In this document: piece after piece, positions 3,001-60,812 of the stretch
Layout: each line of letters begins with the position of its first letter
How positions within the stretch are numbered: the first letter of the stretch is position 1
Origin: Thalia democratica
Lineage: Eukaryota
Direction of reading: 5' to 3'
Length of the DNA stretch: 64,000 bases
NCBI GenBank assembly: GCA_965202585.1
Contig: OZ241829.1
Coordinates: forward strand, 29,202,001-29,266,000
The notes under the pieces: model-generated
Databases searched by the model: none
Seen by the model: only the letters and a program-made list of their open reading frames with translations
What the model was told of the DNA's origin: nothing
Translations under genes and position numbers: made by a program

Positions 3001-5975
3001 TTTTGCTTAATTCACGACTTATGTAAGAAAAAACTCAAACAGTGTAAATATAATTTTACGATTTTTGCTTAAAACTTAATCAAACCATATGCAGTTCTTA
3101 GGTGACATTTTTTTTTATTTGTTAAACAAAACTAACTTTATTGTTTGTAGAACTTAAAATAAACGTTGAATACGACATTGATCTATTAGACCAAGATATT
3201 TATAAAACTTGCTTTCAATGGAGAATACTGTACTTTTATGCTATTTATCGCAAAAATGTGTAATGTATTTGTAAATATTATGTAATAAGCTTTAAGTTTG
3301 TTTTAGCATAGCGCATTAATAAATTAGTATTGTTGTCATATTTTTTTGGTGATAAAGTAGTTTAATATATTAATCCGTTAAGATGAATTACTTTTAATAG
3401 AAGATTATATTTAGAATTTATTTTTAATCAGAAGAATTACGTATTTTTATAATAATATTACTAATTTAGTGTAATATACACACTCCACGAATTTTCTTGA
3501 AATCAAATCTTTACAAATGAGTGTGATAGATACAACTTTTTAAAACTATTTAGTTTTATAGTATTAATAAATTTCTAGAAGTTAGTTAGATACATTATAA
3601 AACAGTTTAACAATCAAAAATATTTCCATGCTTTACCCTAATACAATATTTATAAAAATATGAACAAATGTAGCTGAATATTTACTAAAGACTACAGTTT
3701 TCAATATATTTATTGTTTGTTATTTATTACATTTAAAAATTATACTTTAATAGAAAAACCTTAGTCTATAAACATTGTACTATTATTGAATTAAACATGT
3801 AAAATAAGAATTTTATATATCGAAAACTTGCACTTTTTCTAATACCCAGACAGCTTAGTTTTTTTTATGAAAGTTATATATACATATTTAAATTTATACT
3901 TATAGTTAAGAGTTTAAATTAAACTTAAAAACAATTAAAAACTAAATTTCACTTAAGTTTGAGTTTACAAATACAACGTAAGCTTTTCAGATTACTTGAG
4001 CCTAATAAACTAACTTTTATGTTTATTAAACTTTTATTTACGTTACAAATGTACTTTTTTCTTGTGATTTAAGTTTTTTTGTATACAATTTATTTAGTCA
4101 AACCATACTAAGTCAAAAAAAACTTAAAAAAACAATCTACAATGTAACTTACAAAAAAACCATAAAATTTACTGAACTTAAGGTTAAATTTTATAACCTT
4201 TGTAATTGCAATAATAACCTTTAAATTAAAGTGAAATTTGAGAAAAAATATGCTTTATGTAGTCTAAAATTTAATTTAGATGACATATTTTAAATGAATG
4301 CATTAAAATCTTATTTAAAAATTTTTAAACATTACTTGGTTTTTGAAGTGAGCTATCATAATTTGACTTAGAAATACAGATAAAAGTTAATGAAAATCAT
4401 TGTTTATGACATAGGACAGATTTTAGGTTTCTGAAACATTACATGATTTGTAGTTAAGTAAAACCTATTTTACTTGAAAAAAAAGTTTATATAAGTTTTA
4501 ACTATAATAATTTTTGTCGATATAATTATTTACACATAATGGTAATTTTACAGAAATTAAAAAAATAACAAGTTACTATGTTTAGTCTTTTAAAGGTTTA
4601 TTGTTAACTTATATTAATTTAATAAATACCAAAACTAAGTAAGATAATAATAATAATAAAGTATGTACATTACAAATACTTGTATTTAAAGCATATTAAT
4701 TAACACAGGCTTTGTCTGTGTTCATGTTTAGGATCTGCAATCTAAGTTTGATTGTTTATAACGCAACTTTTAAATCCGTTTTCATAAATTTTTTATCTAA
4801 CAAGGATTAGTTAACTTTGAAGTGTACTTAATCGATTACTTAAAGTAGTTTGTGATTTTTAAAATTAGCGCAACCTCTAAAGTGAAGCTTATAGTTAATT
4901 GGGTTTTTGTTGTAACCAACAAATTAAATGTGAATACCCATAAACCTTTTACAAAAAAATATTCAAAATAGGATTAGGCTCACAAAATATTCTTATTACC
5001 TTTTGAAATTAATTTTCTCAGTTTACAACAGCTAGCTTTAAACTTCTTTAAATAAAATTGACTACTGTTTATGGTACTCGATGGCACACACCACACAACG
5101 GTTTTCACAAATGACGCTTAATCTTATAACGACCAAAATATTCACCAGCCGTCATTTAGTTTTAACTCATAAACTGATAAATCACACTTATCACCCGGTC
5201 TGCGCCGAACGAAGGCATATATTAATCCTGCCACGACCGTAAAACCACAGGGTTTTCACACAAAGATTATTGATGCCTCCGCCATTGCAGCAGAAAAAGT
5301 CTTCGAAAAAAGCCACAAATGTGAGACCGGTGCAAATCTATTTTTTTCAGTACACACGTGCAACCTTTTTGTTCATTGCACGTTATGGCGTTCAACTTAC
5401 CGAATACGCAGTGCTACTGATTTTTAACACTATTTGATTCGCCCCGCGGCCTTTTGTTATCAATACATATACGGACAATGGGTGCAAGTTTTATCAGATA
5501 AGCATAAGCGAGCAGTACAGGTGTTTAAAGCTTTCTAGCAGCCGAGTATGAACTGTGCAATAGAACAGAGGTTCTCAAGCTAAAGTTCTTGAAGTTTCAA
5601 GACGCGCCCGTTTTTAATAAACGTCATTTGAGCTCCGGTCTTAATTAGTTTAAAAAACGAAGCTTTGCGAAATAAAAGCATTAACATGTTAAATACTTTA
5701 ATAACTTTTATTTTTCAATTGTAAAAAACTTTGGTAGTTATTCAATTAAACTAACATCATCAGTATTGCGTTGTTGAAATAAATTTTGGCGTTTTATTCG
5801 GTAAAGTTTAAGAAAAACTGTTTAACTTCATTTAGTGTTAAACAAACCGCGTATTTAAAATCAGGTAACATGAAAACAAAAACTAAGTACGCACGGTTTC
5901 AATAAGTAGTTTAAAGTATTGGTAACAAGTAACAATCGCAAATAAATTCAGGGTTTTAATACCAAGTTATTCAAT

Positions 5976-6021
5976 ATGAGACTGCCACTCCTGCTGTGTA
6001 CCATTGCACTGCTCTTTGTAG
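5976..6021 (+). CDS. Exon 1: signal-peptide-like MRLPLLLCTIALLFV
   Basis: ATG, then Arg and a hydrophobic run, ending at a consensus G|GTAAGT donor (phase 1). This matches the phase needed by the first stefin exon, which has no in-frame ATG of its own. Confidence 0.7.
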
Positions 6022-9000
6022 GTAAGTTGTTTATTTTGTTTTCATTTATTGGCCAAATATAAAAAAAGGTTCTTATAAATGGTCCTTGGACCAAGTGTAC
6101 GAAAAAACCTTTTGGCTGTTGAATTTACACCGCTTGGATGCAGTTTAACGTCTTGTCCAGAACAAGACTTATATAAATATTAATACATAACCGTAAATTG
6201 ATCTTGCTTGGTTAATTATTTAACAATTTTTTTTATTTAAAAGATTGGTATCCTAAAGAATTTTATTGAAAACGTTTTTAAATTGCAGACATGAAAAACT
6301 TTGTTGCAAAATTAAATTATATAAATTTGATAAAAGAAAAATTCTTTAAATCGTAAATAACTTTAATTAACCATTTAAAATACAGCTCTAAGCTTATCTG
6401 AGCATATTATGTATTTCCTTATACGTAAGTTAAGATCAAATAGAAACTGTCTGTTTACAATACGTTTTTGTTTGTAAAAAGAAGTTTAGGTGTTTTTAGA
6501 GCTGGTTTTAAAAAAGCTTAAGAAAGCATGATAATTTTTCTATTTTATGAACTAAATTGGTATAAACTTTATATGAATTAAAGTTTTTACCAATGTAAAC
6601 TTTTGATTTTTTTTTGCATAAGGCGTTTTTGCCTATATTCTAACTATCAATTTTGAAAAAAAAAAATTGTATTTTCAGTCTTCAGCCTATGTTTTTTTTA
6701 ACTGCAGCCATATTAATTTTAACGTTAGTAAAACAATTTTTTTTTAAACTTTAGTTGCTCATTTAAACTCTTTATCGCAGGATTTAGTAGTGTTTAAAAA
6801 TTGATGTATATGTTAGGAATTTGCAACTTTTTTAGTTAAAAATTCATGATTTTTTTAAAACAAAACCGCAATAAAATAAAGTATAATAAGCATTACTGAG
6901 TATTGAAAGACAAATTTGTAATAACCATCAAAGTGTTAATAAATTACAGAAGGAACAAAATTATTGTTAATAAGTTACCGAGAAGCAAAAAAAAAATTAT
7001 CGTTTTAAATTTATAGCTATAAGTATACTTGTCTACGATTATACATTTAAATAAAAAGTTTTTTCGGCTTGTAATTTTGCTAATTTCTTAATACAAAAAC
7101 TATTAATTTCATCAGAAATTAAAGATCAGTCCTTAACTCATTGTAATATTTTACTTTTAAGCACTATATTCAGTCGTTAAAACAGATAGAGATATCATTT
7201 GTTGTAATTTAAAACGCAACACTAACAAAAGTGTAAAGTTATTTAAACCTAATATTGCATAATTCTTGAAACGTTTAAGTTTAAGTTTGAAACGATGAAA
7301 ATTCGCTTAATATCATAAAAACCATAAATGATACATTTGTATTTTTTTTTCATAAGATAAATAAACTTAAAATGTCGATGGTATAATGTTACATTTGTCA
7401 AAGTTTGTGGAAATATTTATGAGATTACTAGATTTTATCTAAGCCCTAATAAGATAAACTAGGCCAAATTTGTTTTTATGGTATGCAATTACCCGACTAT
7501 TATTACGTCATACACTATCTCGCTTTTTAACTGTACCTTGAAGTACATGGCATTCAACTTTTTATTTATTTCCAGAAAACACTTTCAACATTTTAAGGAA
7601 ACAAGAAAACAATCTTAGTAACTCGGTTTAATTTTTCAATAAATACTTTTAGCTCATTTTATTCTTTTTTTGAAATCACAAAGCAGCTATCTACAACAGC
7701 AAATTATTATTTTCCGGATAGCTGTTAACTACTTGAGCAAACGTCATTTCTTGCATAACTAAACTTTCAATAAACGACACTGCAAACGTGTCCTTGAGTC
7801 AGCGAAATTATCAGCAATCAAGAACTTGCACGTTTTTCGAACTAACACTTGTAACAAACGAACAGCATGCCGGCCGGAAAGTCCGCCCATCAAGCCGCTC
7901 CGCCCCTTCGCCTGGCTGTGGTCGGGGGTGCTGCCCGCCACCAGGGAAGTTCAGAAGGTCGCCGATGACGTGAGTGATTGGTTGCATTAGTTTGTTAAAG
8001 TTGTGATACAAGAAATTTTTCAACGGTAAAGTTTATTTTTTGTATATTTTTAAAGTCACTATGGAAACCAGTCTTGTTTTTTATTTTTAAGTTTTTTAAG
8101 ACAAGGTCTGTCGAAAGACCAAGTTATGTTTATATTGTATGTAAAGTTACTATTAAATCAGTCTTGCCTATTTGGTGCTTTAATTTTGACAGTTAAATGT
8201 TTGCTTCTGTAGTGTTAATTTAATTCATGTTTAACAAATAACGTGTTAAAACAAAAACATACAAACCTAGATAGTTTTGGGGCAAAATTTTGTCATGTTA
8301 AGAGTTAAAAAAAGTCTTTGTACCTTAATTTTCCAGGTAAAATGCGTGGTCGACTGGAGGTACAAAAACAGGATAAGAATGTACAAAGCCATCGAATTTC
8401 AAAGGCAAATTGTCGGCGGTACCAACTACAGAATAAAAGTAAGTTTTGAAAAGTTGCATGAACTGAAAAACATTTTACGTTACAAAAGGGGAAAAAAGTA
8501 TGTTATAACCATAGCTTAATAAAAGTAGCATGTGAGAGACTATAGACGGTAAAGGTAATTTAATTTATTTAAAAGCAAGGAATGATTAATTTTGAATACT
8601 TTTAAAAGACTAAGTATCTTTTTATATACTCTGAGCAACTTTTTTCAACTATTATCAAGTATGAAGCAACATCAAACTTAGAACAAAACTTTTATATAAA
8701 TTACTTCAACTAAGAACCATTAAGACTTAAAACATCGAATTCGTTTATAAACTTCAGCAACTAGTGAAGTTTACCAAGTTTGTTTTAATAACATCAAAAT
8801 CACCCAAAACATAAAATCTCAGCTTTAAGCGTTGATAATGGGTTTACTGTTCGCTCGTATTATTTACAAAATAACCAATTTTGAAAGTTTAATGCTTTTT
8901 TGCCATGCTAATCAAAGCATGCAGATGACCATAAGCACTAACCAGAAACAAAGTTGATCTGACTACCTTTAACAGTGTTTTACAAAAATACAATGCTACG

Positions 9001-12000
9001 ATGTTATCTTGTTTTATATGTTACGCTCTTATTGTAGCTTAAGTTTGAAACAAAAAACTAAAAATAATTTATAAATAGACTTTTACGCGTAGTTTTGGTT
9101 TACCGATGTTTCGATATGTCAATATGTGCAATGATATAAAAAACAAATATTGCAAGTTTCATGCACCCGACAAGTTTCAATAACCTCCGACAAAATCTAT
9201 CACAATTACAGTTTATTTTGTTAAACACCTATTTTCTATATTTTACAAAGAAAATATTTTTTGTTCATATCAAGTCATTTAAGTATTGTCTTTCATACAG
9301 CTTAAGATTATTGAAAGTTACTTTATTTATTTTTTCAATTTAAGTATGTTTGATGTTTTATTTGACAAAATCAAGCTTAATATAAATACGTATTCTAAAA
9401 TAATTTTGGAATTAACTAAAATTAAAATCTTATTTATTTAAAATCTTTTTTTTTAAATTACTTGAAAAACTTCAACACCATACCAAGGTTGCAATATTTT
9501 TTTTATCGATGCAAGTTTTAAATATTTCTAAATATTTATTTAAAACATTAATAACTTATAAAACAACTTATTCTCGAAAAACCACACTTTTAACAAGTTG
9601 ATCGTTTTGTCAATAATAATTCGTATCCAAACTTTACAAAAGATTTATTAGTTTTGAAACTCCTTTCAAAGTTAAAGTTTTTCATATTTAAATCCGATAA
9701 AACTTGTAAAAGCTGATGAGCTATATATTACCCTTTTTTAAATTGCTTGACTAAATTTTAATAAGTTAGAAAAATTTGTCGTGTCTCTTACCAAACTAGA
9801 CTAATAATTTACTGCCTCAAGATCAAAAGTTAATACATGCGTTTTTGAGACATATCAAAAGACTTTTAAACAAACAAAATGTTGAAATTAAAACAAATAA
9901 TGTAAAATGGTTCTATGTTTCTTATCAAAAGAAAGAAAAGTACAAAAAGTTCTAAAATTAAACTTTAACGAACTAATTATAAAGTTAAGCAAAAGAGGAG
10001 TTATGACAAAGCATATTAAAGTTATTGTATTCTCAACTATGATATAAATGAAAAAAAGTTTATAAAATTTAGTTATGATACTTTAGTAGAGCGACAATAA
10101 GAACTTTAAGGTTAAACTTAAAACTTATTTTGATAAACATTTTGTGCTTTGCGTCTAAAATTAATTTTAAAATAAACTTTAGTTTTAAATTAACCTTAAT
10201 AGTGGTTATGAAAAGTTTAATTTCATTTTGAAAGTTTAAACAAGATATTCCTTCTATTAAAAAAAATTATAAGAAGAACAGTGAAGGCTATAATATATAA
10301 TATTATTATTACATTTAGGTAAGAAACTAAGTTGATTTAAAAATAATTTTTTTGATAAGAAAAAAAAACAATCAATAGTTATAAATAAAACTGTTAGAAA
10401 CTTTAATAAATAATGAAATATACTAAAACATATATAAAACAAAAAAGTGTTTATAAATAAAAATAAGTAACTACACGCCACCAAATACATTTGTAAGCTT
10501 TAAAAAAACAATTCACAAAAACAACTTGATTTTAACAGATACAAATTGATGACGGTCTGTTTATAGCAGTTAGGGCTTTCAGATCGTTCCCGGGGGTTAA
10601 AGCCCAATTCAGGGGTTTCATGAAAAGAAACAAAATAGGCAAGAGACCTAGGAAATGCAAAGGAAAAGGAAGAGGTAAAGGTAAAGGAAAGTGCAAGCCA
10701 TCTGCAGGTGGTGACTTAGACGAAGAATTTGTAGATGTTATAGTTGGCCCTGGTGGTGAATCTCCTATTCCTATTGATACTTCTGTTGATATCGACGCTT
10801 CAGTTGATGTCGATGCTTCTGTTGATGTAGATGCTTCTGTTGATGTAGATGCTTCTGTTGATGTAGACGCTTCGGTTGATTTAGATGCTTCTGTAGATGT
10901 CGATGCTTCTGTTGATGTCGATGCTTCAGTTGATTTAGATGCTTCAGTTGATGTCGACGCTTCAGTTGATTTAGATGCTTCAGTTGATTTAGATGCTTCT
11001 GTTGATGTCGATGCTTCAGTTGATGTCGATGCTTCTGTTGATGTAGGAGCCTCAGTTGATTTAGATGCTTCTGTTGATGTAGACGCTTCAGTTGATGTCG
11101 ATGCTTCAGCTGATGTCGACGCTTCAGTTGATGTCGACGCTTCAGTTGATGTAGGCGCTTCAGTTGATTTAGATGCTTCAGTTGATGTAGGAGCTTCAGT
11201 TGATGTCGACGCTTCAGTTGATGTCGATGCTTCAGTTGATGTCGACGCTTCAGTTGATGTCGATGCTTCAGTTGATGTAGGAGCTTCAGTTGATTTAGAT
11301 GCTTCAGTTGATGTAGACGCTTCAGTTGATGTAGGAGCTTCAGTTGATGTCGACGCTTCGGTTGATGTCGATGCTTTTGTTGATTTAGATGCTTCTGTTG
11401 ATGTCGATGCTTCAGTTGATGTCGATGCTTCAGTCGATGTAGATGCTTCAGTTGATGTAGGAGCTTCAGTTGATGTCGATGCTTCAGTTGATGTCGACGC
11501 TTCAGTTGATGTCGATTCTTCTCTTGATGTAGGAGCTTCAGTTGATTTAGATGCTTCAGTTGATGCAGATGCTTCAGTTGATTTAGGAGCTTCAGTTGAT
11601 GTAGGAGCTTCAGTTGATTTAGATGCTTCAGTTGATGTCGATGCTTCAGTTGACGTAGATGCTTCAGTTGAAGTAGATGCTTCTGTTGATGTAGATGCTT
11701 CAGTTGATGTAGGAGCTTCAGTTGATGTCGATGCTTCTGTTGATGTAGATGCTTCTCTTGATATAGGAGCTTCAGTTGATGTAGATGCTTCTGTTGATTT
11801 AGATGCTTCAGTTGATGTAGACGCTTCAGTTGATTTAGATGCTTCTGTTGATTTAGATGCTTCAGTTGATGTCGACGCTTCAGTTGATATCGATGCTTCA
11901 GCTGATGTCGACGCTTCAGTTGATGTAGGCGCTTCAGTTGATTTAGATGCTTCTGTTGATGTCGATGCTTCTGTTGATGTAGATGCTTCAGTTGATGTAG

Positions 12001-15000
12001 GAGCTTCAGTTGATTTAGGTGCTTCTGTTGATGTCGATGCTTCTGTTGATGTCGACGCTTCTCTTGATGTAGGAGCTTCAGTTGATTTCGACGCTTCAGT
12101 TGATGTCGACGCTTCTCTTGATATAGGAGCTTCAGTTGATTTAGATGCTTCTGTTGACGTAGATGCTTCTGTTGATGTCGATGCTTCAGCTGATGTCGAT
12201 GCTTCAGTTGATGTAGGCGCTTCAGTTGATTTAGATGCTTCTGTTGATGTCGATGCTTATGTTGATGTAGATGCTTCAGTTGATGTAGGAGCTTCAGTTG
12301 ATTTAGATGCTTCTGTTGATGTCGATGCTTCTTTTGATGTCGACGCTTCAGTTGATTTAGATGCTTCAGTTGATGTAGGAGCTTCAGTTGATGTCGACGC
12401 TTCTCTTGATGTAGGAGCTTCAGTTGATTTAGATGCTTCTGTTGACGTAGATGCTTCTGTTGATGTCGATGCTTCAGCTGATGTCGATGCTTCAGTTGAT
12501 GTAGATGCTTCAGTTGATGTCGACGCTTCAGTTGATGTCGATGCTTCAGCTGATGTCGACACTTCAGTTAATATAGGCGCTTCAGTTGATTTAGATGCTT
12601 CTGTTGATTTAGATGCTTCTGTTGATGTAGATGCTTCAGTTGATGTAGGAGCTTCAATTGATTTAGATGCTTCAGCTGATGTAGATGCTTCAGTTGATGT
12701 AGGCGCTTCAGTTGATTTAGATGCTTCTGTTGATGTCGATGCTTCTGTTGATGTCGATGCTTCAGTTGATGTAGGAGCTTCAGTTGATTTAGATGCTTCT
12801 GTTGACGTAGATGCTTCTGTTGATTTAGATGCTTCAGTTGATGTAGACACTTCAGTTGATTTAGATGCTTCTGTTGATGTCGATGCTTCTGTTGATGTCG
12901 ACGCTTCTGTTGATGTAGATGCTTCAGTTGATGTCGACGCTTCTCTTGATGTAGGAGCTTCAGTTGATTTAGATGCTTCCGTTGACGTAGAGGCTTCTGT
13001 TGATTTAGATGCTTCAGTTGATGTAGGAGCTTCAGTTGATGTAGATGCTTCAGTTGATGTAGGAGCTTCAGTTGATTTAGATGCTTCAGCTGATGTAGAT
13101 GCTTCAGTTGATTTAGATGCTTCAGTTGATGTCGACGCTTCAGTTGATGTCGATGCTTCAGCTGATGTCGACACTTCAGTTGATGTAGGCGCTTCAGTTG
13201 ATTTAGATGCTTCAGTTGATGTCGATGCTTCTGTTGATGTAGATGCTTCAGTTGATGTAGGAGCTTCAGTTGATTTAGATGCTTCTGTTGACGTAGATGC
13301 TTCTGTTGATTTAGATGCTTCAGTTGATGTAGACGCTTCAGTTGATTTAGATGCTTCTGTTGATGTCGATGCTTCTGTTGATGTCGACGCTTCAGTTGAT
13401 GTAGATGCTTCAGTTGATGTCGACGCTTCTCTTGATGTAGGAGCTTCAGTTGATTTAGATGCTTCAGTTGATGTAGGAGCTTCAGTTGATTTAGATACTT
13501 CTGTTGATGTCGATGCTTCTGTTGATGTCGACGCTTCAGTTGATGTCGATGCTTCAGTTGATGTCGACGCTTCAGTTGATGTCGATGCTTCTCTTGATGT
13601 AGATGCTTCTGTTGACGTAGATGCTTCTGTTGATTTCGATGCTTCAGTTGATGTAGGAGCTTCAGTTGATGTCGACGCTTCAGTTGATGTAGGCGCTTCA
13701 GTTGATTTAGATGCTTCAGTTGATTTAGATGCTTCAGTTGATGTAGGAGCTTCAGTTGATTTAGAAGCTTCAGTTGATTTAGATGCTTCTGTTGATGTAG
13801 GAGCTTCAGTTGATGTCGACGCTTTAGTTGATGTAGATGCTTCTCTTGATTTAGATGCTTCAGTTGATGTCGACGCTTCAGTTGATGTCGATGCTTCAGC
13901 TGATGTCGACGCTTCAGTTGATGTAGGCGCTTCAGTTGATTTAGACGCTTCTGTTGATTTAGATGCTTCTGTTGATTTAGATGCTTCTGTTGATGTCGAT
14001 GCTTCTGTTGATGTAGATGCTTCAGTTGATGTAGGAGCTTCAGTTGATTTAGATGCTTCTGTTGATGTCGATGCTTCTGTTGATGTCGATGCTTCTCTTG
14101 ATGTAAGAGGTTCAGTTGATTTAGATGCTTCTGTTGACGTAGATGCTTCAGTTGACGTAGATGCTTCAGTTGATGTCGATGCTTCAGTTGATGTAGGAGC
14201 TTCAGTTGATGTAGATTCTTCTGTTGACGTAGATGCTTCAGTTGACGTAGATGCTTCAGTTGATGTCGATGCTTCAGTTGATGTAGGAGCTTCAGTTGAT
14301 GTAGATGCTTCTGTTGACGTAGATGCTTCAGTTGACGTAGATGCTTCAGTTGATGTCGATGCTTCTGTTGACGTAGATGCTTCAGTTGATGTAGGAGCTT
14401 CTGTTGACGTAGGAGCTTCAGTTGATTTAGGCGCTTCTGTTGATGTAGGCGCTTCTGTTGATGTAGATATCGATGCTGGTTTAGATATTGATGCCGGTTT
14501 AGATATTGATGCTGGTTTAGATGTTGATGCCGGTTTAGATATTAATGCTGGTTTAGACATTGATGCTGGTTTAGATATTGATGCAGGTTTAGATATTGAT
14601 GCAGGTTTAGACCTTGAAGCTGGTTTAAATGTTGATGCTGGTTTAGATGTTGATGCTGGTTTAGATATTGATGTTTCTGTCAATGTTGATGCTGGTTTAG
14701 ATATTGATGCTGGTTTGGATATCGATGCCGGTCTAGATATTGATGCAGGTTTAGATATTGATGCAGGTTTGGACCTTGACGCTGGTTTAGATGTTGATGC
14801 TGGTTTAGATATTGATGCTGGTTTAGATATTGATGCTGGTTTGGATATCGATGCCGGTCTAGATATTGATGCTGGTTTAGATGTTGATGCCGGTTTAGAT
14901 ATTGATGCTGGTTTAGACATTGAAGCTGGTTTAGATATTGATGCAGGTTTAGATATTAATGCAGGTTTAGACCTTGACGCTGGTTTAGATGTTGATGCTG

Positions 15001-18000
15001 GTTTAGATGTTGATGCTGGTTTAGATATTGATGTTTCTGTCAATGTTGATGCTGGTTTAGATGTTGGCGCTGGTTTAGATATCGATGCCGGTCTAGACAT
15101 TGATGCTGGTTTAAATGTTGAAGCTGGTTTAGATATCGATGCCGGTTTAGATATTGATGCCGGTTTAGATATTGATGCTGGTTTAAATATTGATGCCGGT
15201 TTAGATGTTGATGCTGGTCTAGATATCGATGCTGGTTTAGATATCGATGCTGGTTTAGATATTGATGCAGGTTTAGACCTTGACGCTGGTTTAGATGTTG
15301 ATGCCGGTTTAGATATTGATGCTGGTTTAGATATTGATGTTTCTGTCAATGTTGACGCTGGTTTAGATATTGACGCTGGTTTAGATATTGATGCCGGTTT
15401 AGATATTGATGCAGGTTTAGACATTGACGCTGGTTTAGATGTTGATGCTGGTTTAGATGTTGATGCTGGTTTAGATATCGATTCTGGTTTAGATGTTGAT
15501 GCCGATTTAAATATTGATGCTGGATTAGATATTGATGCAGGTTTAGACATTGACGCTGGTTTAGATATCGATGCCGGTTTAGATATTGATGCTGGTTTAG
15601 ATATCGATGCTGGTTTAGATATTGATGCCGGTTTAGATGTTGATGCAGGTTTAGATGTTGATGCTGGTTTAGACCTTAACGCTGGTTTAGATATCGATGT
15701 TTCCGTTAATGTTGATGCCGGCTTAGATATTGATGCTGGTTTAGACATTGACGCTGGTTTAGATATCGATGCTGGTTTAGATATTGATGCCGGTCTAGAT
15801 GTTGATGCTGGTTTAGATATTAATGCAGGTTTAGATGTTGATGCTGGTATAGATATTGATGCAGGTTTAGACCTTGACGCTGGTTTAGATATTGATGCTG
15901 GTTTAGATGTTGATGCTGGTTTAGACCTTAACGCTGGTTTAGATATCGATGTTTCCGTTAATGTTGATGCCGGCTTAGATGTTGATGCCGGTTTAGATAT
16001 CGATGCTGGTTTAGATATTGATGCCGGTTTAGATGTTGATGCCGGTTTAGATTTTAATGCAGGTTTTGATGTTGATGCTGGTTTAGATATTGATGCAGGT
16101 TTAGACCTTGATGCTGGTTTAGATGTTAATGCTGGTTTAGATGTTGATGCTGGTTTAGATGTTGATGCCAGTTTAGATATTGATGCTGGTTTAGATATCG
16201 ATGCTGGTTTAGATATTGATGCCGGTTTAGATGTTGACGCTGGTTTAGATATCGATGCCGGTCTAGATATTGATGCTGGTTTAGATATTGATGCAGGTTT
16301 AGACCTCGACGCTGGTTTAGATATTGATGCTGGTTTAGATGTTGATGCAGGTTTAGACCTTGACGCTGGTTTAGATGTTGATGCTGGTTTAGACATTGAT
16401 GCTGGTTTAGATATTGATGTTTCTGTAAATGTTGATGCTGGTTTAGATCTTGACGCTGGTTTAGATATTGATGCCGGTTTAGATATTGATGCAGGTTTAG
16501 ACCTTGACGCTGGTTTAGATATCGATGCCGGTATAGATATTGATGCCGGTTTAGATATTGATGCTGGTTTAGATGTTGATGCTGGTTTGGATCTTGCTGC
16601 TGGTTTAGATATTGATGCCGGTTTAGATATTGATGCCGGTTTAGATATCGATGCTGGTTTAGATGTTGATGCTGGTTTAGATATTGATGCCGGTTTAGAC
16701 ATCGATGCTGGTTTAGATATTGATGTTTCAGTTAATGTTGATGCCGGTTTAGATATTGATGCCGGTTTAGATATTGATGCTGGTTTAGATATCGATGCTG
16801 GTTTAGATATTGATGCCGGTTTAGATATTGATGCCAGTTTAGATATTGATGCCGGTTTAGATATTGATGCTGGTTTAGATATTGATGCCGGTTTAAATAT
16901 CGATGGTGATTTAGATATTGATGCAGGTTTAGACATTGACGCTGGTTTAGATATTGACGCTGGTTTAGATATTGATGCTGGTTTAGACATTGATGGTGGT
17001 TTAGATATCGATGGTGGTCTTGATGTAGTTGGCGGATTCAGTGCAGTTATGAAAGCCACTGCAGACATCCAGAGCATCTGCGATGAAGTCAGTTTCTTTT
17101 ATTTTATTCTATCTTGTAGATCAATTTGTTTAAGCTTTTAACGTATTTTTAAAATTTGATTGCATTTAGATACTAGGTTTATACAAACTTTATTTCTTTT
17201 TCTAATTTTAAAACTTATATTATGAATTTAAATACTAGCTGATACAAGTTCAGTATTCGAAAATGTAAAATTTCACAACTGACGTATCACAAAAATTTTA
17301 ATCTAATATAAACCATATTTTTTTTCATAATTTAATCTATAATTCTCAAGGTCAAATCTCAAGTTGAATTTCACATGGGAACAAGTTTTGACATGTTCAA
17401 AGCAGTAGAATTTTCAACCCAAGTTGTAGCCGGGTTGAACTACAAAATAAAGGTTCATAGCTAATCGTGCTTTTATAACTTATAAGTTTACAATTTTACA
17501 AAAAAGTTCACTGATGTTTGTTTTACACCTCTAAATGCTGTTTATAAAACTCTCATTTAAGTTAGTTAAAACATGTAATATTCGAATATTAAATAACATT
17601 TTTGTTAGTTATATTGCTTCTTTTATATTAAAATATTAAAGATGATGTTTTATCAAACACCATTCTCAACTTTGAAATTATCTTTAGATTTTTTTTTTGT
17701 CATTAATCTGAGATTAAAAGTATTAATTGTTGTTAACAACTCAAGCTATACATTAACTTAAAACTAAAGTTGTTTCTTTGTATAAAAACTAAACTCAGTC
17801 TGTGAAAAAAAAGTCAACATTTTAAACGCTCAGAACATTTTATTATGTGACATTAAAATATTTATTGGTGTATGCAATAAATTTCATACATTGCTTATCA
17901 GTTCAATAAAAAGCAACCATTTCAGAATCTGCTTATACTCTTTCACACAGAAAGTAGTCATATAGACATCATTAGTTTTCAACTCAAACCGTTTTTTTTC

Positions 18001-19682
18001 TGATTCAGGTCCAGATCGGCATGAAGGCCTTCCTTACCGTCGTCGTCTACTCCTCGCTGGACGGCTCCCTCTCCCTCATGGAGATCTACGACGGACCCTT
18101 CAAGGTTTATTTAAACAAATACGTATTCAAAAATCCGATGCTTATCTATTGGGACGTAAAAAGCCAGTAAAATATAAAAAAGATATTAAAAAATGTTCTA
18201 TTCTTACAACTTATATTTTCACACTCCCACAAACTTTTTAATACCAACGCATTCCACAGAGTGTATAGCATTGCATTATTATCAATTTTAATTACTCCCT
18301 TCAAGGTCCCGATGATCATGGTGGACCCGACGGAAGTGGGACTTCCCGAGCTGGTCGTCAGGGAAATTCCCGACTTCGGAATCCAGATCCAGCCCGCCAG
18401 GTTGGGTGATGACGTTGTGGGCGGATTCGGAGCTGTCGCGAAGGCCACCTCGGGAATCCAGCAGATCTGCAACCAGGTTTCGTGTTTACTCGAGCGTACG
18501 GTTTTTCAGCTTTTTAAAATTAAACTTTGTTTTTGATTTTCACTCTCGTAGATCGTATTGTTGGTGCAACTTGGCAACGAAAAAAGAAAGTTGGTGTAGC
18601 TTGATTCACCGCGTTTTTTATTTATAGTTAAATAATTTTTTTTGTCGAGCTTTAAGGTTTGTTTACTGATAAAAGTTTTTGTTGCGCAAAATTGCTTTTA
18701 GATAGTAAATATAAGCGAGTGAATAGTTGTTGCGTATAAACCGTTTATCTATATTTTTTGATACCACTTGAAACAAAGTCTCAGTTTTGTACACTTAATG
18801 TTTTAAACAACAGCAAAGTTCTGTTTTTCAACTCAAAACTATAGAAACATCTTGTTGCAGCTGAAATCCGCCGTTGAAGCTAGCGCCGGTACAGTTTACG
18901 GAATGTTCAAAGCAGTGGAATACTCCACACAGGTTGTAGCTGGAATGAACTACGAAATAAAGGTAATAAGTTATACAGTTTTTTTTTTTAAGCACTCAGT
19001 GAAATAAAATATACGCTTAAAGAACTCCCATGATAAATAACGCTGCACACAAACAAACAAATATCTAATTTTCTGACCAAAAATAATAATAAAAATTTCA
19101 AACAAAAATTTCAGTATTAAAAGATATAAATTGAAGAAAAAAACGGGTTCAAGTACATTATTATTTATACTTTGATTTCATGATGTAAAAGTATTATTAT
19201 TTATACTGTTTATTCATGATTACAAGTGCATTACTATAATTATTATTTTTTTCATAAATACAAGTGTAACATTATTTATATTACTTTTCCATGATTACAA
19301 GTGTATTGCTAATAATAATATGAATTATACTATTGTTCCGCAGGTGCAAGTTGGCGACGGCTCCTTCATCACCTTCACCTGCTTCGAGGGCTTCGACGGC
19401 TCCCTCTCCTTCACCTCGCTGGTGTCCGGCAGCGTGGACGTCGACACGGACAACGCCCAGCTGGACGGATCCGTCAACGTGGACGCGGACGCGGGAAAGG
19501 CCGGCGGCAAGCTGAGCCTGAGCCTGGACGGGCCGGGCAAGATCGGCGGCGGGCTGAGCTTGAGCTTGGGCGGCGGAAAGGCCGAGGGCAAGGTCGGCGT
19601 GTCGGCGGGCGGGGAGACGAAGGCCGAGGTGGGGGTGAAGCAGGAGAAGAAGAGGGGAAAGTTCTTCGGTTTCTTCGGATGA
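5976..19682 (+). CDS. Secreted triple-stefin (type-1 cystatin-like) protein with giant acidic hexapeptide repeat; join(5976-6021,7866-7969,8337-8438,10539-17087,17351-17452,18009-18104,18306-18476,18861-18962,19344-19682), about 2,536 aa
   Basis: All introns are GT-AG and phase-compatible. There are three QxVxG motifs (QIVGG, QVVAG, QVVAG), each in a 102-nt exon bounded by phase-0 introns as in vertebrate CSTA/CSTB exon 2. Stefin N-terminal helix motifs are present (PATREVQKVADDV, GGFSAVMKATADIQSICDEV, GGFGAVAKATSGIQQICNQL). The exon-2 acceptor is uncertain: 7803, 7815 and 7866 are all phase-compatible. Confidence 0.88.
8337..8438 (+). CDS. Stefin domain 1 middle exon (VKCVVDWRYKNRIRMYKAIEFQRQIVGGTNYRIK)
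   Basis: ttttccag acceptor, GTAAGT donor, 102 nt, QxVxG motif. Confidence 0.9.
10539..17087 (+). CDS. Giant 6,549-nt exon: end of stefin domain 1, basic K/G/C segment, 347 acidic hexapeptide repeats, start of stefin domain 2
   Basis: The tttaacag acceptor is in frame with the ORF at 10620. IQIDDGLFIAVRAFRSFPG resembles the third stefin exon. The exon ends ICDE|GTCAGT, at the conserved stefin intron-1 position. Confidence 0.9.
10776..14465 (+). repeat. Coding tandem repeat block A: 205 x 18 bp, consensus (D/G)ASVD(V/L)
   Basis: GAT GCT TCW GTT GAT GTM units. The 18-bp register holds at 10776, 12558 and 14448. Confidence 0.97.
14472..17027 (+). repeat. Coding tandem repeat block B: 142 x 18 bp, consensus DAGLD(I/V/L), with seven DVSVNV variant units
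   Basis: GAT GCT GGT TTA GAT ATT units; 2556 nt = 142 x 18. Confidence 0.97.
17351..17452 (+). CDS. Stefin domain 2 middle exon (VKSQVEFHMGTSFDMFKAVEFSTQVVAGLNYKIK)
   Basis: 102 nt, AG/GT bounded, QVVAG motif. Confidence 0.92.
18861..18962 (+). CDS. Stefin domain 3 middle exon (LKSAVEASAGTVYGMFKAVEYSTQVVAGMNYEIK)
   Basis: 102 nt, ttgttgcag acceptor, GTAATA donor, QVVAG motif. Confidence 0.92.
19344..19682 (+). CDS. Terminal exon: end of stefin domain 3 plus Gly-rich tail ending KKRGKFFGFFG*
   Basis: ttccgcag acceptor; VQVGDG start like the third stefin exon; strongly G/C-ending codons; TGA stop; AATAAA at 19899-19904. Confidence 0.88.
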   Translation: MQVGDGSFITFTCFEGFDGSLSFTSLVSGSVDVDTDNAQLDGSVNVDADAGKAGGKLSLSLDGPGKIGGGLSLSLGGGKAEGKVGVSAGGETKAEVGVKQEKKRGKFFGFFG

Positions 19683-21250: not shown

Positions 21251-23738
21251 CTATTTAATTCTCCTGCCCAAATAAACCAGAGGGTTTCTGCTCTTGTTAA
21301 TGAAACTCTCGCCCATCAGTGTTTTGCACTCTTCCTCCATCTCGTACATGCTGCGCACTTTCACCGTGGCAATGTTCGAGTTGGCCTGACACAAAAGCCG
21401 GCAAAGACCGATTTTCCACTCTTTGAAGCCCAAGTCGATCTGTTTTTGTTGACAAGTATCGTTGTGTTAAGTAATTAGTAGGAAAAGAATGCAGAGGTTG
21501 TGTGTATTGTAAGTTCAAGTTTGGTAAATAAAAAAAGTTTGATTGCCATTTTTTCTTTTAAGACTACTGTGGCATACTTTCCTGTTTTTTTGATAGAAGA
21601 AGTACTGAAAAATAATACAGATTTTAACTAAATATTTGTATGTTTTATAGTTTTTCGAGTAAATTTTAATACTCTTTGTTCGAATAACCATTGTAAAACA
21701 AGTTTCAACCTTTTTGTGGATAAAAACAGAACTATATTAAACTTAATTAAAAAAAGATCCCGTTTTTCAAACTTTTTGTAACAAACAAAACTGTTAAAAA
21801 GACTAAAGGCTGATCAAAACTGTTTAAACAATAAAACAAAATCACAAACGTGTTCCAACTTCGCGTTGTTTTTCAGCAGCTGAATGACGTCATGGCAGCT
21901 GAGTACCTCTTCGTCGAAAATCACCGCGTTCCTGACGACCAGCGACGCGTTGAAGACGTTTATCTGCCGCAGCTCCCTGCACCTCGCCGTGACGTCGTTC
22001 AAAATTTCCCCCGAGATGTCGGCGCCGCTCAAGCGTATCGTTTCGAATTGAGAAAGGAGCGGGCGGAAGGCTCGGAAGATTTTCTCCGTTTTCTCGCAGC
22101 ACTCGGCAAAGTTGAACTTCAACTTTCCCTCGCCGACGTCCAAGTCGAGAAAGAAGTTCTCCTCCTCGCAGTGGAACTTGAGCGCGCTGAGGCCGGGGCA
22201 GCCGGCCATGATGTCGGCGATGACGGTGACGTCATCGACGTCCTCCGGGTCGGTGACGCGCAAGTGACGCAGGAAGCAGCAGTTTTCGGGGACGAGCTTC
22301 AAACAGCCGCCGGACACCGTCGTGTTCGTCAGGTCCAGCCTCTCGATCTGGGGGTTTTCCAAAACGAACCGGCGCAGCTCCGCATCGTCCAACGAGCAGT
22401 CGATGAGGTCGAGGCTGTTGAGCTTCATCTCGCTGACGACTCTCAGGCACTCGTCGGTCACGTGCTCCTTCACTCTAAGTTCTTTGAGGTGAGGGCAGTT
22501 TTTCTGCAGGTTCGCGTAGAAGCGCAGAGCGGCTTCGGGCTCGGGGTCGCACAGACTGCAGTCGACGAGGTGCAGTGACGTCAGCGAACGCAGGTTGCTG
22601 ACGTCATCGAGCATTCGCTCATCAAGGTCGTGGTAGGTTTTCAGTTGCAAGCGTTGTAGGTTGCTGTTGTTTCTGATGAAGCTGGAAAATAATAGAAGTT
22701 GTTGAGTCAAGTTTAAAGTAATTGATATGTTGTTTTTTTTTACACCTAGGTTTGTAGTTTTCAAACAACTTTTAGCTTTAAAGTCAAACCTTTAGTTTAA
22801 TATGAAGTGTAGCACTAGTTTTTAAGTTAAGTTTAAAACATTGATTCATGGGATATAGTTTAACACAATTTAGATTTTTTGTTTATTTATTGATAAAATA
22901 AGTAAATATATGTTACTTGACACAAAGTATAATAAGGAAACCTCATTATTAGAACTCTTTTACTTACTGGAACTAAATTATGGATTTGTAATGGTTATAA
23001 AATATCTTTTCAAAATTTAAAAACAGAATCGATATTTTCAATGTAAGCAACTAAATAAACAAAAAGCTGTTAAAGTTTATTTTTTCCGTAAAAGTAAAAG
23101 AGGTATTGTGCAAGACAATAAAAAAACTATCAAAGTTTTAGTGGTATTTTATCATGTTTCAACGACAAACGCCTACAGCAAAAAACTAACAAAAAAGTAC
23201 TTAAATCGATTAATTTTCGGTTTCTAAGCTCAAAGTTAGAACCTCAACTGCAAATTATATGGCTCCTTGGTTTAGTTTAGGATTTATCGCCCGAAGACCA
23301 CAAATTTGTTTAATCCAAAAGCTCCTTGTTTTTTTTTTAAATTATACAAAAACTAAAACTTGTTTAAAGCCACAACTTAGAAAACGATTTTTTTCAAAAA
23401 AACATACTCAGATTCAAAATTACTACATTTTAATTAAATTTCAGAACAAACCAGCATAAGGCCGACATGGCGGTTTCGTCCTGCGATCCGTCGATGACGA
23501 CGCTCAAGTGCCGCAGGTCGGTGTTTCCCGCCAAAAACGAGTTCACGCGCTCCCTGCCCCGCTCGCAAAACTTGGAAAAGACGATTTTCATGGACTTCAA
23601 GCGCCGCAGGTAGCCGGTTGCCGATTGACGGCACGCGATGCTGGCCTGTGAAAAGCTGATCAGCTCCTGAAAGCTCAGCTGGGCGAATATTTTCTCGGCA
23701 ATGTGCCGTTGACACATGACGAACTCAACTAGATCCAT
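21251..23738 (-). CDS. F-box/leucine-rich-repeat (FBXL-like) protein; complement(join(21251-21439,21850-22681,23452-23738)), about 435 aa
   Basis: N-terminal F-box-like motif RHIAEKIFAQLSFQELISFSQASIAC; LRR-type segments (LRSLTSLHLVDC, CPHLKELRV, LNSLDLIDC, IERLDLTNT); GC-rich exons; both introns GT-AG with matching phases (2, 0). Confidence 0.82.
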
Positions 23739-24249
23739 GGCTGAATGTTCACACAGGTCAAAGGACAAAACAAACGAATAAAACAAAAAGTAGTGTTTAA
23801 AAGTTATATGTTGTACTACATTGAGAACTTAGGTAAAGAAAAAAACTTTTTTTAGTTATTATTTTTAAAACATTGTTGTCAAGGTTATTAGTAATTGAAA
23901 AAAGCAAAAATATAAATTAGTAAAAAATACAATTGTTTTTACTAAACTATAATGTTGTCAAACTACAATTATTTTAAGAAAATATACTTAAACATTTTTT
24001 ATTTGTAAGAAAAAATAAAGTTTTATCGAGTTTAGTTTTTTTGAGAAGACCTAAAAATCTAATTCATTATTTAATAAAATGTTGTAAAACCTTGTTCTAC
24101 TAGGTTTATATTTATAATGGAGTAAAATAAAATTATTAACATTGTAAATTTATATGTTTTATTTGAAAAGAGGAACAAAAATTTAGCATGAAGAAACTGT
24201 TAAATTACTTAAAACAGCTAAAACTCGGTGTTAATAGGAAACTGACAAA

Positions 24250-25236
24250 CTATCTCTTGAATGAGATTAAACTTGAAGTTAGTGAGTCTACTGACGATTT
24301 ACTTGACACTGACTGCGTTGGCAAGTTGAAAGTATAAAACTCAAAAGTGTCGCTTGAATCTTTTGAGTCGTGGTTTTTGTGCAAATTTTTCATCTTGTAA
24401 GTTTTTTCTGTAACTTTGTTCCTGTTGAACCTAACATGCTTTTTTCTTTCAGAAACGTCTTCAAACTGATGTTCATTACTTTTCCTAACACTCTTTTCTA
24501 CTGGTTTTAATTTTCTTTCACGATTTTTAGTTTTCCTGTATACGTCTTCCAAAAACTTTATCTTGTCTAACAGAACATCTATTGCTTTCTTCTTCTCCTT
24601 ACCCAAGCCCTTCGAGTTGTTTTTGTTCTTTAGCCAGTTGTAGTGCATTTCCAGTTCGCTGCTCTTCACTCCGAAGCTGTTTTCACTTCGCTGCAATCTT
24701 GCAACGCTGCTGCAATCGCTGTTATTGCTGCAACCGCTGTTTTGGCGGGAAAGATTGTTTTCATTCTGCCTGCTCTCAGAGTTACAGTTCACTTTTTCTT
24801 CTAACAGCGACAGTATTTTTTTGAGCAGCGATATTTCGCTCGTGGTATCCTCAGCAATTTCCAAACTTCCGCCTCTTTTAAAACGCTCCTCTGAACCAAC
24901 GTTGATATTAGTGGTTTTAGACTTGTTCAGTTTATTAAAATGCAACTTTTTGCGTTTTTTATCGTTGTTTTTCTTTATTCGTAGTACTTTGTTTATGTTT
25001 TTGAACTCGTCATCTAAAAACTCTTTAAAGTTCGGAACTTTTTTCTCGGAAATGTCTTTTTTATTCAACATGATTCTATTTCTTCTTTTAACTCTTTGTT
25101 CTTTTACAAATTGCAATTTATTGACAAGGTTGTTCAAGTTTCCAGACAAGTTTTCCACTGCACTTTCTACTTTGTCTTTTCTTTCATTGCCAACAGACTT
25201 TTTTGGTTGGTGAAGTCTAAAGCCAGTTCTGTCCAT
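24250..25236 (-). CDS. Hypothetical 328-aa Lys/Asn/Ser-rich single-exon protein, likely coiled-coil/disordered
   Basis: A 987-nt open frame in very AT-rich DNA where random ORFs are short; ATG to TAG; no family motif recognised. Confidence 0.6.
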   Translation of the reverse strand: MDRTGFRLHQPKKSVGNERKDKVESAVENLSGNLNNLVNKLQFVKEQRVKRRNRIMLNKKDISEKKVPNFKEFLDDEFKNINKVLRIKKNNDKKRKKLHFNKLNKSKTTNINVGSEERFKRGGSLEIAEDTTSEISLLKKILSLLEEKVNCNSESRQNENNLSRQNSGCSNNSDCSSVARLQRSENSFGVKSSELEMHYNWLKNKNNSKGLGKEKKKAIDVLLDKIKFLEDVYRKTKNRERKLKPVEKSVRKSNEHQFEDVSERKKHVRFNRNKVTEKTYKMKNLHKNHDSKDSSDTFEFYTFNLPTQSVSSKSSVDSLTSSLISFKR

Positions 25237-59000: not shown

Positions 59001-60812
59001 AGAAGTTATTAGTAGTGTTGTAAGTTTTACGCTAATTCTTCACTTTGTACTTAAACTTGTTTTTAGAGATCGTTTTAACACAAACTTTCAAGCGGCTTAG
59101 TTCAACAATGTTGAACTTAACTTTTTCGACTTAAGATGCATTTTCTTTGAAATTAAAATTACCTACCATAAGCTAAACAATAATTAAAAAAAAAGAGCTT
59201 ATATGTTTAAATACTAACAGTGCACAACAATTTTCAACAGCTCACTGCAGCTGAATTAAAAACACAACTGAATGAAATAAACATTTCGATGGTATTAAAC
59301 CTAGATGGGAGTTTCTGTTTTGAGACTGAAGATAAATGGAACCGTGGTCAGTTTGTATAGTGTTCAGCTTTATACTATCCTTTGATATTTCATAACACAC
59401 TCAGCGTAATTGAAATTAACTGATTTAACTGGTTAGAAGTTAATTAATTGAAAGTGCTACGTGACAGGTTACATGACAATTCAAATTCGGACAACTCAAA
59501 TTCGGACAATTCAAATTAAAAAAAAATATTTAAAACACTATATCTCAAAAAATAACATAAATTTGAGAAAAATAAAAAAAGTTTATGTAGATCTGATTAA
59601 AACATACAAGCTACTTTTTCTTTTATGCAAAATCTTAAATACTTTTAAGGAAATTTTAAAATTACTAAAAATAACTATATTTTTTATTTAATTTGAGCTA
59701 TATCTCAAAATGTATATAATATTTTGCAAAAAGAAAAAAAAAATGGCTTGTAGATATTAATACGATCTACATATGTATTTTTTATATTAGACAAATATGC
59801 ATTACTTTTTTAGTTGTGGCCCTTTCAATTTTTTTATAAAAATTTGAATTGTCGGAATTTGAGTTGTCCGAATTTGAATTGTCATGTAACCTGTCACGTA
59901 GCACTATCAATTAGTTAACGAATTTAAACAGTCGTGCACCCTACGTGACAATATCAAAGCAAGTTACTAAATCGCTTAGACAACCTATAAAAATATAAAA
60001 ATGTTGCAACTATTCTGCAATTGCTATGATATATCAAAAACGAGAATATAATACTCAAAGGATTAAAGATAGCAAACGCAGTGTACGCGTACTTGGTTCC
60101 AGTACTGATAATTCTGATGTGTTACATGGCAGTCATCAGGAAACTTTATTTGAAACACCGCAACTCCTCAGTCGGCAGACATTCCAAATCCACGTTGAAT
60201 AAAGTCACCAGAACCGTCTGTGTTCTAGTAAGTAAACTTTCAAACTTTAGTTTTTTATTTATCTTGTTTTATTCGTTTTATTTATTTATGTCTCATGAAA
60301 ATTTATAAACATACATCAGAAATCTTTTCTTTACATCCTCATTAATTTCTCATTAGGCTTTTTTCATTTTAAGGAAATAATTATGCCAAAAATTTTAAGT
60401 TTTCTGTTTTTTCAATGAAATCAAAATGTTTTATACGAATAATAGTATTCTAATTACAACTCAAGCTTCAAATTTAATCTTCAAAAATGGTTCAAATCTA
60501 CTTAAAATCCACGTTTTTTCTAAGAAAATTTTCATCCACCAGATAGCGGTGTTCATGGTGGACATGATGATGTACCACGCGATGAAAATTCCCGCCATTT
60601 ACTCACCGCAGATGCTGGACGGCGCGACCCTTATCGTCTTGCAGAGCTTCTCAATCCTCCTCGCCTCCTCCAATTCCGCGGCGAATCCCCTCGTCTACGC
60701 CTTCTACGCCAAAAACTTCCGCGGCGACTTCCGCAAGGCGGCGGGAATCCCCGCGAGCAAAACTTCCAAGCGCTTAAAGTTCCCGAAAAAGACGGCAAAG
60801 GACGTCGCCTGA
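56064..60812 (+). CDS. Class-A neuropeptide GPCR, galanin/allatostatin-A/kisspeptin-receptor-like; join(56064-56291,57809-58010,58802-58931,59980-60227,60543-60812), with two apparent 1-nt deletions (about 56195 and 60038)
   Basis: N-terminal sequons NLS/NMT/NVS; TM1 GIIGNFLV; TM2 LLNLACADVFFLLFYVPVQ; WALGRFMC; DRY split by a phase-2 intron; TM5 AYLVPVLIILMCY; TM7 SNSAANPLVY. Introns are GT-AG and phase-compatible. It could be a pseudogene allele if the frameshifts are real. Confidence 0.82.
59439..59919. mobile_element. MITE/foldback element with about 80-bp terminal inverted repeats in GPCR intron 3
   Basis: Left GTTAATTAATTGAAAGTGCTACGTGACAGGTTACATGACAATTCAAATTCGGACAACTCAAATTCGGACAATTCAAATT matches the reverse complement of the right end with 3 mismatches. 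The TSD is ambiguous (GAA or TTAA). Confidence 0.88.

Follow-up and report, generated by a model that had tools for sequence, protein, structure and literature searches.

A predicted three-stefin gene of Thalia democratica with 347 acidic hexapeptides in one inter-domain linker

How could a gene for small cysteine protease inhibitors come to spend most of its coding length on an acidic repeat, and what might the resulting protein do? This question is raised by a locus at positions 5976-19682 of a 64,000-nucleotide (nt) stretch of DNA from Thalia democratica (GenBank assembly GCA_965202585.1, contig OZ241829.1, forward-strand positions 29,202,001 to 29,266,000), referred to here as the window, in which an initial annotation had described a secreted protein built of three stefin domains around an Asp-rich hexapeptide scaffold. 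In our computational analysis the locus resolves into a single plus-strand gene of nine exons, rebuilt from splice motifs, with a product of 2,536 amino acids (aa). The explanation we favor, with somewhat more confidence than doubt, is that an 18-nt minisatellite underwent runaway expansion in a linker of a multi-stefin gene, and that the product would be a secreted polyanion that takes its place in a gel or matrix guarded by its own stefins.

The integrity of the gene rests on its fourth exon, a giant of 6,549 nt (10539-17087, like all features of the gene on the plus strand), which begins, just past an AG acceptor and an in-frame TAA, with the last third of stefin 1 (I-Q-I-D-D-G-L-F...F-R-G-F), continues with a basic, Cys-containing patch (~14 Lys or Arg and 2 Cys in 27 residues) and a short acidic, Pro- and Gly-containing lead-in (together 10620-10775) and the two adjoining repeat arrays A (10776-14465) and B (14466-17021), and ends, before a GT donor, in the first third of stefin 2 (V-V-G-G-F-S-A-V...I-C-D-E). 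Because the end of stefin 1, the array and the start of stefin 2 are thus read in the same frame of one open exon, stefin 1 and stefins 2 and 3 belong to one gene. The sole long plus-strand open frame, 10620-17141, runs through both arrays. Upstream, exon 1 (5976-6021, 46 nt) carries an ATG and a signal-peptide-like hydrophobic segment and ends in the phase-1 donor G/GTAAGT; exon 2 (7866-7969) encodes an N-terminal extension and the opening third of stefin 1 (W-S-G-V-L-P-A-T-R-E-V-Q...), and exon 3 (8337-8438) is the 102-nt middle exon of that domain, with a Q-I-V-G-G loop and a match of its own to the Pfam cystatin family PF00031 (E 1e-3). Downstream, the middle exon of stefin 2 (exon 5, 17351-17452, 102 nt, Q-V-V-A-G, PF00031 E 1e-4) is followed by its last third (exon 6, 18009-18104), by a 36-aa linker joined to the first third of stefin 3 (V-V-G-G-F-G...; exon 7, 18306-18476), by the 102-nt middle exon of stefin 3 (exon 8, 18861-18962, again Q-V-V-A-G, PF00031 E 1e-5) and by exon 9 (19344-19682), which holds the last third of stefin 3, degenerate hexapeptide-like motifs (V-D-V-D / V-N-V-D-A-D-A-G), a Gly-rich tail with terminal F-F-G-F-F-G and the stop. 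All introns are of the GT..AG type, the phases are consistent throughout, and this terminal stop is the only one, so that the phase-consistent gene of the initial annotation is borne out by the in-phase model and by the open exon that links stefin 1 to stefin 2. The window as a whole is very AT-rich, with a guanine-plus-cytosine (GC) content of about 20-30%; between 10 and 18 kb it is ~40%, with a strong skew of G over C and T over A. Exon GC ranges from 36% to 69% (exon 2, 69%; exon 9, 66%; exon 5, 36%), and the GC-rich exons have a very high GC content at third codon positions (GC3).

The three domains, each encoded in three pieces of which the middle one is a 102-nt exon, match PF00031 once spliced (E 6e-7, 1e-10 and 2e-10 for domains 1, 2 and 3), all above the curated cut-off. 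Their best matches in the PDB are stefins A and B (8e-14 to 1e-10), with domain 3 aligning to residues 3-77 of human stefin A at E 8e-14 and stefin B next; the classical C-terminal 20 residues lie outside this alignment. The first hairpin loop Q-x-V-x-G is present in all three domains, as Q-I-V-G-G, Q-V-V-A-G and Q-V-V-A-G, and the N-terminal trunk reads V-V-G-G in domains 2 and 3. The domains hold 1, 1 and 2 Cys, with neither the conserved four-Cys pattern nor a disulfide pattern, and the whole protein has 8 Cys, 7 of them after the leader, and no N-x-S/T sequon. The initial assignment of three stefin domains is upheld by these matches: by sequence the domains are stefin-type, and the protein is best regarded as stefin-derived rather than as a classical stefin.

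RNA evidence for the 3' half of the model comes from contigs of marine plankton libraries. Poly-A metatranscriptome contigs (run X1), 90-99% identical to the locus, contain the GT..AG joints 17452>18009, 18104>18306, 18476>18861 and 18962>19344, exact after allowing for the stated offsets of the contig alignments, and exon 9 is also covered by RNA contigs of a second run. These four joints therefore put stefins 2 and 3, the linker between them and the tail on one spliced mRNA. The whole 3' locus is also present in DNA contigs of two organisms (A and B), of which A is probably the source, those of organism B being ~93-95% identical over it, the last array units included. In Tara Oceans metagenome contigs we find a relative of exon 9 that is 87% identical, with a conserved acceptor and a ratio of nonsynonymous to synonymous substitution rates (dN/dS) of 0.19; across species, purifying selection thus acts on the tail exon. 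One intron stands apart: the 201-nt intron at 18105-18305, within the bridge between stefins 2 and 3, is spliced in RNA, occurs once in the genome, carries the 11-nt direct repeat CCCTTCAAGGT at both ends and has an interior that differs between the contigs of organisms A and B (skips 18113/18115>18225). It has the look of a recently gained intron that split an ancestral bridge exon. An origin as an introner was considered and rejected, as its sequence is single-copy.

What, then, is the array? By Tandem Repeats Finder, two 18-nt arrays lie side by side, at 10776-14468 (205 copies) and 14464-17018 (142), with 83-84% matches and 0% indels; translated, they give 205 units of (D/G)-A-S-V-D-(V/L) in array A and 142 units of D-(I/V/L)-D-A-G-L in array B, the latter with seven D-I-D-V-S-V/N-V interruptions. 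The total of 347 hexapeptides at 10776-17021, forming 2,083 aa (residues 164-2246) or 82% of the protein, agrees with the count and share originally given. Both arrays keep a single register, phi-D-phi-D-A-(S/G), in which the polar/hydrophobic alternation holds at 2,067 of the 2,083 positions (99.2%). The composition is extreme—625 Asp and 6 Glu, no Lys and a single Arg—and makes the whole protein 26% Asp, its net charge being about -620. Variation from unit to unit is mostly synonymous or conservative: the among-unit ratio of nonsynonymous to synonymous differences (pN/pS) is 0.33 in array A and 0.27 in array B, with pS of 0.30-0.375 against pN of 0.10, and the coding frame has no stop, compared with 265 and 325 in the other two plus-strand frames. 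The array is under coding constraint. An open reading frame (ORF) of 1,606 aa on the opposite strand (12257-17077), rich in Ser, Thr, Ala, Glu and Lys and with one stop in frame, is a by-product of the repeat.

The origin of the array is best approached through its relatives in the same genome. A search of the 802-Mb assembly (1,833 contigs, in whose numbering the window lies at C5:29.20 Mb) returned a dozen or more stefin-like middle exons, most of the matches being weak. The most informative relative is a two-domain stefin gene at C2:75,345,900-75,348,300, with a tandem duplicate ~26 kb downstream (about 75.372 Mb), which shares the exon plan of the giant-array gene, including a fused bridge exon that joins neighboring domains, but has its own ATG (M-E-Q-Q-Q-M...), no signal peptide, only two domains and no tail. 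Its bridge exon leads from the end of domain 1 (V-Q-I-D-D...A-E-F-K-G-F) through a linker of 9 aa to the start of domain 2 (I-L-G-G-Y-S...I-C-D-Q); the giant exon follows the same plan, and its ends are recognizably related. Since the two exons are homologous, the array and the basic patch are an insertion and expansion in an inter-domain linker. The word scaffold in the initial annotation may therefore overstate the case: the long acidic array is there, but by bridge-exon homology it is an expanded linker. Under the explanation we favor, a tandem multi-stefin ancestor would have carried an 18-nt coding minisatellite in one of its linkers, which then expanded without restraint, and the repeat motif may have been seeded from a tail like the V-D-V-D / V-N-V-D-A-D-A-G that follows stefin 3. 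Stefin copies related to the two-domain gene also occur on C1468, C7 (an inverted pair), C8, C590, C937, C1 and C9, so that the stefin family is expanded in this genome.

Several observations count against this explanation. No RNA contig was found over any of exons 1-4 or over the joint of the giant exon to exon 5, and the length of the array is known from the assembly alone. In principle the array could be removed through in-phase donor-like sites at 10675 and 10681, paired with the AG at 17029. Elsewhere in the genome there are further 18-nt arrays with long open frames but no stefin exons, so that such expansion is possibly a genomic habit and not an adaptation. A structure prediction by AlphaFold2 for 240 aa of array A, run with no alignment, gave no secondary structure and a mean predicted local distance difference test score of 42. 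Finally, domain 1 has W-L in the N-terminal trunk where its paralogs have G-G; the trunk of stefin 1 thus appears altered, and its inhibitory strength is probably the least certain of the three. The lack of RNA contigs over the giant exon, the sites that flank the array and the other arrays would also suit a different account, in which the array is a selectively unimportant runaway minisatellite, or an "exitron" that is usually spliced out, and the working product is a compact secreted inhibitor of three stefin domains that has no separate role for the polyanion, much as the C2 paralog does the same job with 9 aa of linker. We regard this account as unlikely. An array under no constraint is hard to reconcile with a pN/pS of ~0.3, with 6.2 kb free of stops and indels despite TCA, TTA and GGA codons that stand one step from a stop, or with an alternation of 99.2% held across two diverged sub-arrays, and the candidate acceptors have weak pyrimidine tracts. 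As to the missing RNA, an 18-nt array of such length can hardly be assembled into short-read contigs in any case.

The other arrays deserve description in their own right. At C377:37,300-44,750, a 7-kb array of 18-nt units reads, in one frame, E-A-N-V-G-V more than 150 times, with open stretches 1,351 and 707 aa long, and finishes in ...K-E-E-K-G-F-F, recalling the end of the stefin gene, K-R-G-K-F-F-G-F-F-G; no stefin exon lies within ~10 kb on either side. At C2:60,693,700-60,698,300, several frames of a 4.6-kb array are open, one of them reading L-G-K-R-D-V ~180 times; with its G-K-R, which has the look of amidation and dibasic processing sites set between tripeptides, this could be a giant neuropeptide-like precursor or a mere minisatellite. 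Related 18-nt arrays at C9:17,702,000-17,706,000 and C6:72,963,200-72,966,000 read S-(S/P)-D-P-S-A on one strand and V-R-R-R-R-(W/F) on the other. Near the hexapeptide arrays on C377, C9, C6 and C2, no stefin exon was found within the 10-30 kb inspected per locus (~2-15 kb on each side).

Whether the protein is secreted depends on its 5' end. The frame of exon 2 is set by its match to the paralogs' G-G-W-S-x-x-x-P-A-T-x-x-V-Q, and GC3 agrees with it (~88% in the homology-fixed frame against 56% in the frame of ATG 7867, by hand count). As this frame holds no ATG, an upstream phase-1 exon is required. The candidate for exon 1 has an ATG with A at -3, begins M-R followed by a hydrophobic run of 11-13 residues, and forms a sharp island of 50% GC between flanks of ~26%. 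Between 3000 and 7865 there are two ATG-started hydrophobic candidates, and the other one, at 6689, lies outside any GC island. An alternative start at ATG 7867, which would read "V-V-G-G", was rejected: its frame stops after 33 codons, and a hybrid frame would be four residues short of the paralogs, in which W/F-S-x-V separates G-G from x-P-A-T. The frame with W-S-x-V-x-P-A-T agrees with the paralogs. A cluster of GC-rich islands at 5071-5611, just upstream of exon 1 and without a convincing ORF, may be a promoter, a 5' untranslated region or another element. From the predicted protein we infer, reasonably in our view, that exon 1 encodes a signal peptide and that the product is secreted; of the secreted protein initially proposed, the hydrophobic exon in its GC island and the phase-matching donor stand, and secretion itself would follow from them. 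Alternatively, exon 1 could be a chance ATG with a hydrophobic run and the protein an intracellular acidic one that starts elsewhere, for example at Met 10620 or from an unseen or trans-spliced 5' end, as might be suggested by 5' exons devoid of RNA and by a closest paralog that starts at an ATG of its own and carries no signal peptide. We consider this very improbable, given that stefin 1 pieces lie intact and in phase ahead of Met 10620 and match PF00031 above its cut-off, and that the upstream phase-1 exon which exon 2 needs has a candidate whose GC island is sharp and whose donor fits the consensus.

If it is secreted, the preferred reading leads to a specific picture of the product. In order, it would comprise a predicted signal peptide, stefin 1, a basic Cys patch of charge +14, the array of 2,083 residues, stefins 2 and 3 and the Gly-rich tail, that is, a polyanion of ~250 kDa with three tethered inhibitors of papain-family proteases. 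In sea-water-like Ca/Mg, the array would behave as a highly hydrated, cation-binding chain whose carboxylates are screened and bridged by these ions and which builds, or becomes part of, a gel or matrix outside the cells (tunic, mucus or coat), while the +14 patch and the odd Cys could supply electrostatic and disulfide cross-links. The stefins—at least 2 and 3, in which the G-G, Q-V-V-A-G and second-loop motifs are intact—would keep papain-family cysteine proteases off the chain. Such proteases (cathepsin L-like) prefer a hydrophobic residue at P2. The array, in turn, would offer no trypsin or chymotrypsin sites (0 Lys, 1 Arg, no aromatic residue) and a V, L or I beside every Asp. Given this preference and the V, L or I at alternate positions, cathepsin L-like enzymes would be best suited to cut the array, so that stefins carried on the chain would shield just this polymer and any matrix around it.

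As to conformation, the array is probably a disordered, strongly charged polyelectrolyte. Pfam matches on it are to beta-barrel families, which are matched through the alternation only, and a left-handed beta-helix of the bacterial hexapeptide type, whose letter pattern would fit, was rejected because PF00132 is absent even at E up to 10 and AlphaFold2 modeled no fold. The alternation would nevertheless permit amphipathic beta-strands once the charge is screened. A bolder version of this idea, which we hold to be doubtful, makes the array a cation-switchable amphipathic beta-strand polymer, stored as a soluble or condensed coil and converted in sea-water Ca2+/Mg2+ to an Asp-faced cross-beta sheet or fiber with a hydrophobic core, cross-linked by the basic patch and the odd Cys and protected by the stefins; if so, pelagic tunicates would possess an extracellular biomaterial of a new, self-protecting kind. 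The same composition could instead point to a regulator of calcium mineral, akin to the Asp-rich matrix proteins found in shells, corals and dentin, that nucleates, templates or inhibits CaCO3, with the stefins as matrix-protecting or mineral-binding modules in the manner of fetuin. Some ascidians do make spicules; 26% Asp would lie on one face if a beta-strand conformation were adopted; 203 Ser stand in an S-x-D/E context, which resembles the consensus of secretory kinases; a signal peptide is predicted; and in composition the protein comes nearest to Aspein and other acidic disordered proteins. This alternative strikes us as decidedly unlikely, in that Pfam and HMMER searches show no sequence homology to Asp-rich matrix proteins, there is no sign that the tunicate host calcifies, the relatives come from open-ocean plankton samples, and Gly replaces Ser in array B.

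Should the minisatellite-expansion model hold, it would provide a clean, datable case of a protein that gains a new physical character through minisatellite expansion in a linker, turning a gene for a small inhibitor into one for a chain of net charge about -620, with a short-linker paralog in the same genome for comparison. Stefins in the textbook sense are single-domain cytosolic proteins, and the family would gain a secreted multidomain member. The strictly alternating, lysine-free sequence of Asp and Val, Leu or Ile is, in addition, a natural analogue of designed ion-responsive beta-sheet peptides and of possible interest to materials and biomineralization research.

The assembly also identifies its host. 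Contig C1833 (14,120 bp) is a mitochondrial genome whose large ORFs all lie on the same strand and whose COX1 contains TGA codons; its tRNAs include Met(UAU) besides Met(CAU), and anticodon UCU beside Gly(UCC) and Ser(GCU). Read as Gly, 34 of 34 AGR codons in COX1 complete universal motifs (G-G-F-G-N, G-G-G-D-P, F-F-G-H-P-E-V and P-T-G-I-K), which identifies the ascidian mitochondrial code (NCBI table 13) and thus a tunicate host, likely a pelagic one. COX1 fragments with many stops at C4:56.84-56.95 Mb and on C757 are nuclear copies of mitochondrial DNA. The cellulose-synthase markers PF03552 and PF01341 gave no match in an exon-by-exon search, a result that we judge uninformative. Within the window, the neighbors of the stefin gene lie at 21814-23786 and 24250-25236 (both on the minus strand), at 34070-34410 and at 60426-60812 (plus strand); the neighboring contents include ORFs that look like Leu-rich repeats and F-boxes, with no Pfam match, a Lys/Asn-rich ORF of 328 aa, a 15/30/45-nt tandem repeat and a weak 7tm_1 fragment (E 5e-3).

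How singular is this architecture? In a search of 5.8 billion proteins, we found no homologs of the first 111 aa and, among long proteins, none of the N-terminal 95 aa of the giant exon. The array and its 5' junction had no relatives in the protein sets or contig collections searched, and the 3' junction had relatives in metagenome contigs only. No homolog of the basic patch was found in the genome, in protein sets or in JGI metagenome contigs, and the genome holds no paralog of the tail or of the basic junction. An HMMER scan of 1.84 billion representatives with a 600-aa query gave 1,555 matches, all on the array part and at 10-56% identity; the highest Asp content among the best 150 was 18%, marking a different kind of protein, and no plausible stefin loop was seen in the 45 that were checked for it. 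We read these matches as probable compositional look-alikes. One of two scans for junction relatives in JGI metagenome contigs was empty, and the match from the other was a stop-ridden G-L-E-I-D simple repeat and not a relative. The literature likewise yielded no stefin or cystatin domain joined to an acidic or Asp-rich repeat, so that the original claim of an architecture with no described counterpart persists across the protein sets, metagenome contigs and literature searched. The architecture appears to be a lineage-restricted orphan, whose function we infer.

Set beside known systems, the protein shares with the classical stefins (cystatin A/B; MEROPS I25A) a related sequence, a Q-x-V-x-G loop three times over, G-G in domains 2 and 3 and the absence of the type-2 disulfide pattern. 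However, classical stefins are intracellular, single-domain proteins with no signal peptide, whereas here there are three domains, a predicted signal peptide and 2,130 inserted residues that separate domain 1 from domain 2. Kordis and Turk (PMC2784779) described only stefins and cystatins in urochordates, with no multidomain cystatins, and single-copy stefin and cystatin genes in basal deuterostomes. The premise that stefins are normally single-domain and cytosolic describes the usual case, but secreted, cystatin-like stefins are already known in flukes and myxozoans, for example FhCyLS-2 (PMC9986714). Like our protein, these combine stefin-type sequence with a secretion signal (here predicted) and have lost the classical C-terminal motif; in contrast to it, they are single-domain parasite proteins, usually with two disulfides, and have no repeat array (PMC9986714).

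A different kind of likeness links the protein to kininogen (one of the type 3 multidomain cystatins, I25C, with type-2 domains in tandem), histidine-rich glycoprotein and fetuin, secreted chains in which two or three cystatin-fold domains are combined with a long, charge-biased region of low complexity. In these three proteins such regions bind surfaces, ions or mineral, and they measure tens to about a hundred residues, against 2,083 here. Their domains are of the disulfide-bonded type 2 and restricted to vertebrates (PMC2784779), whereas the best matches of ours are stefins A and B. With Aspein, Asprich and dentin phosphophoryn, finally, the array has in common a very high proportion of Asp carried by short repeats, a prediction of disorder, and secretion (here predicted as well). 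These proteins have neither the strict hydrophobic alternation nor protease-inhibitor domains and are not homologous to ours, the likeness being compositional only. Taken against all of these systems, an extracellular structural polymer that carries its own inhibitor caps, as initially proposed, would be a plausible description of the protein encoded at this locus.

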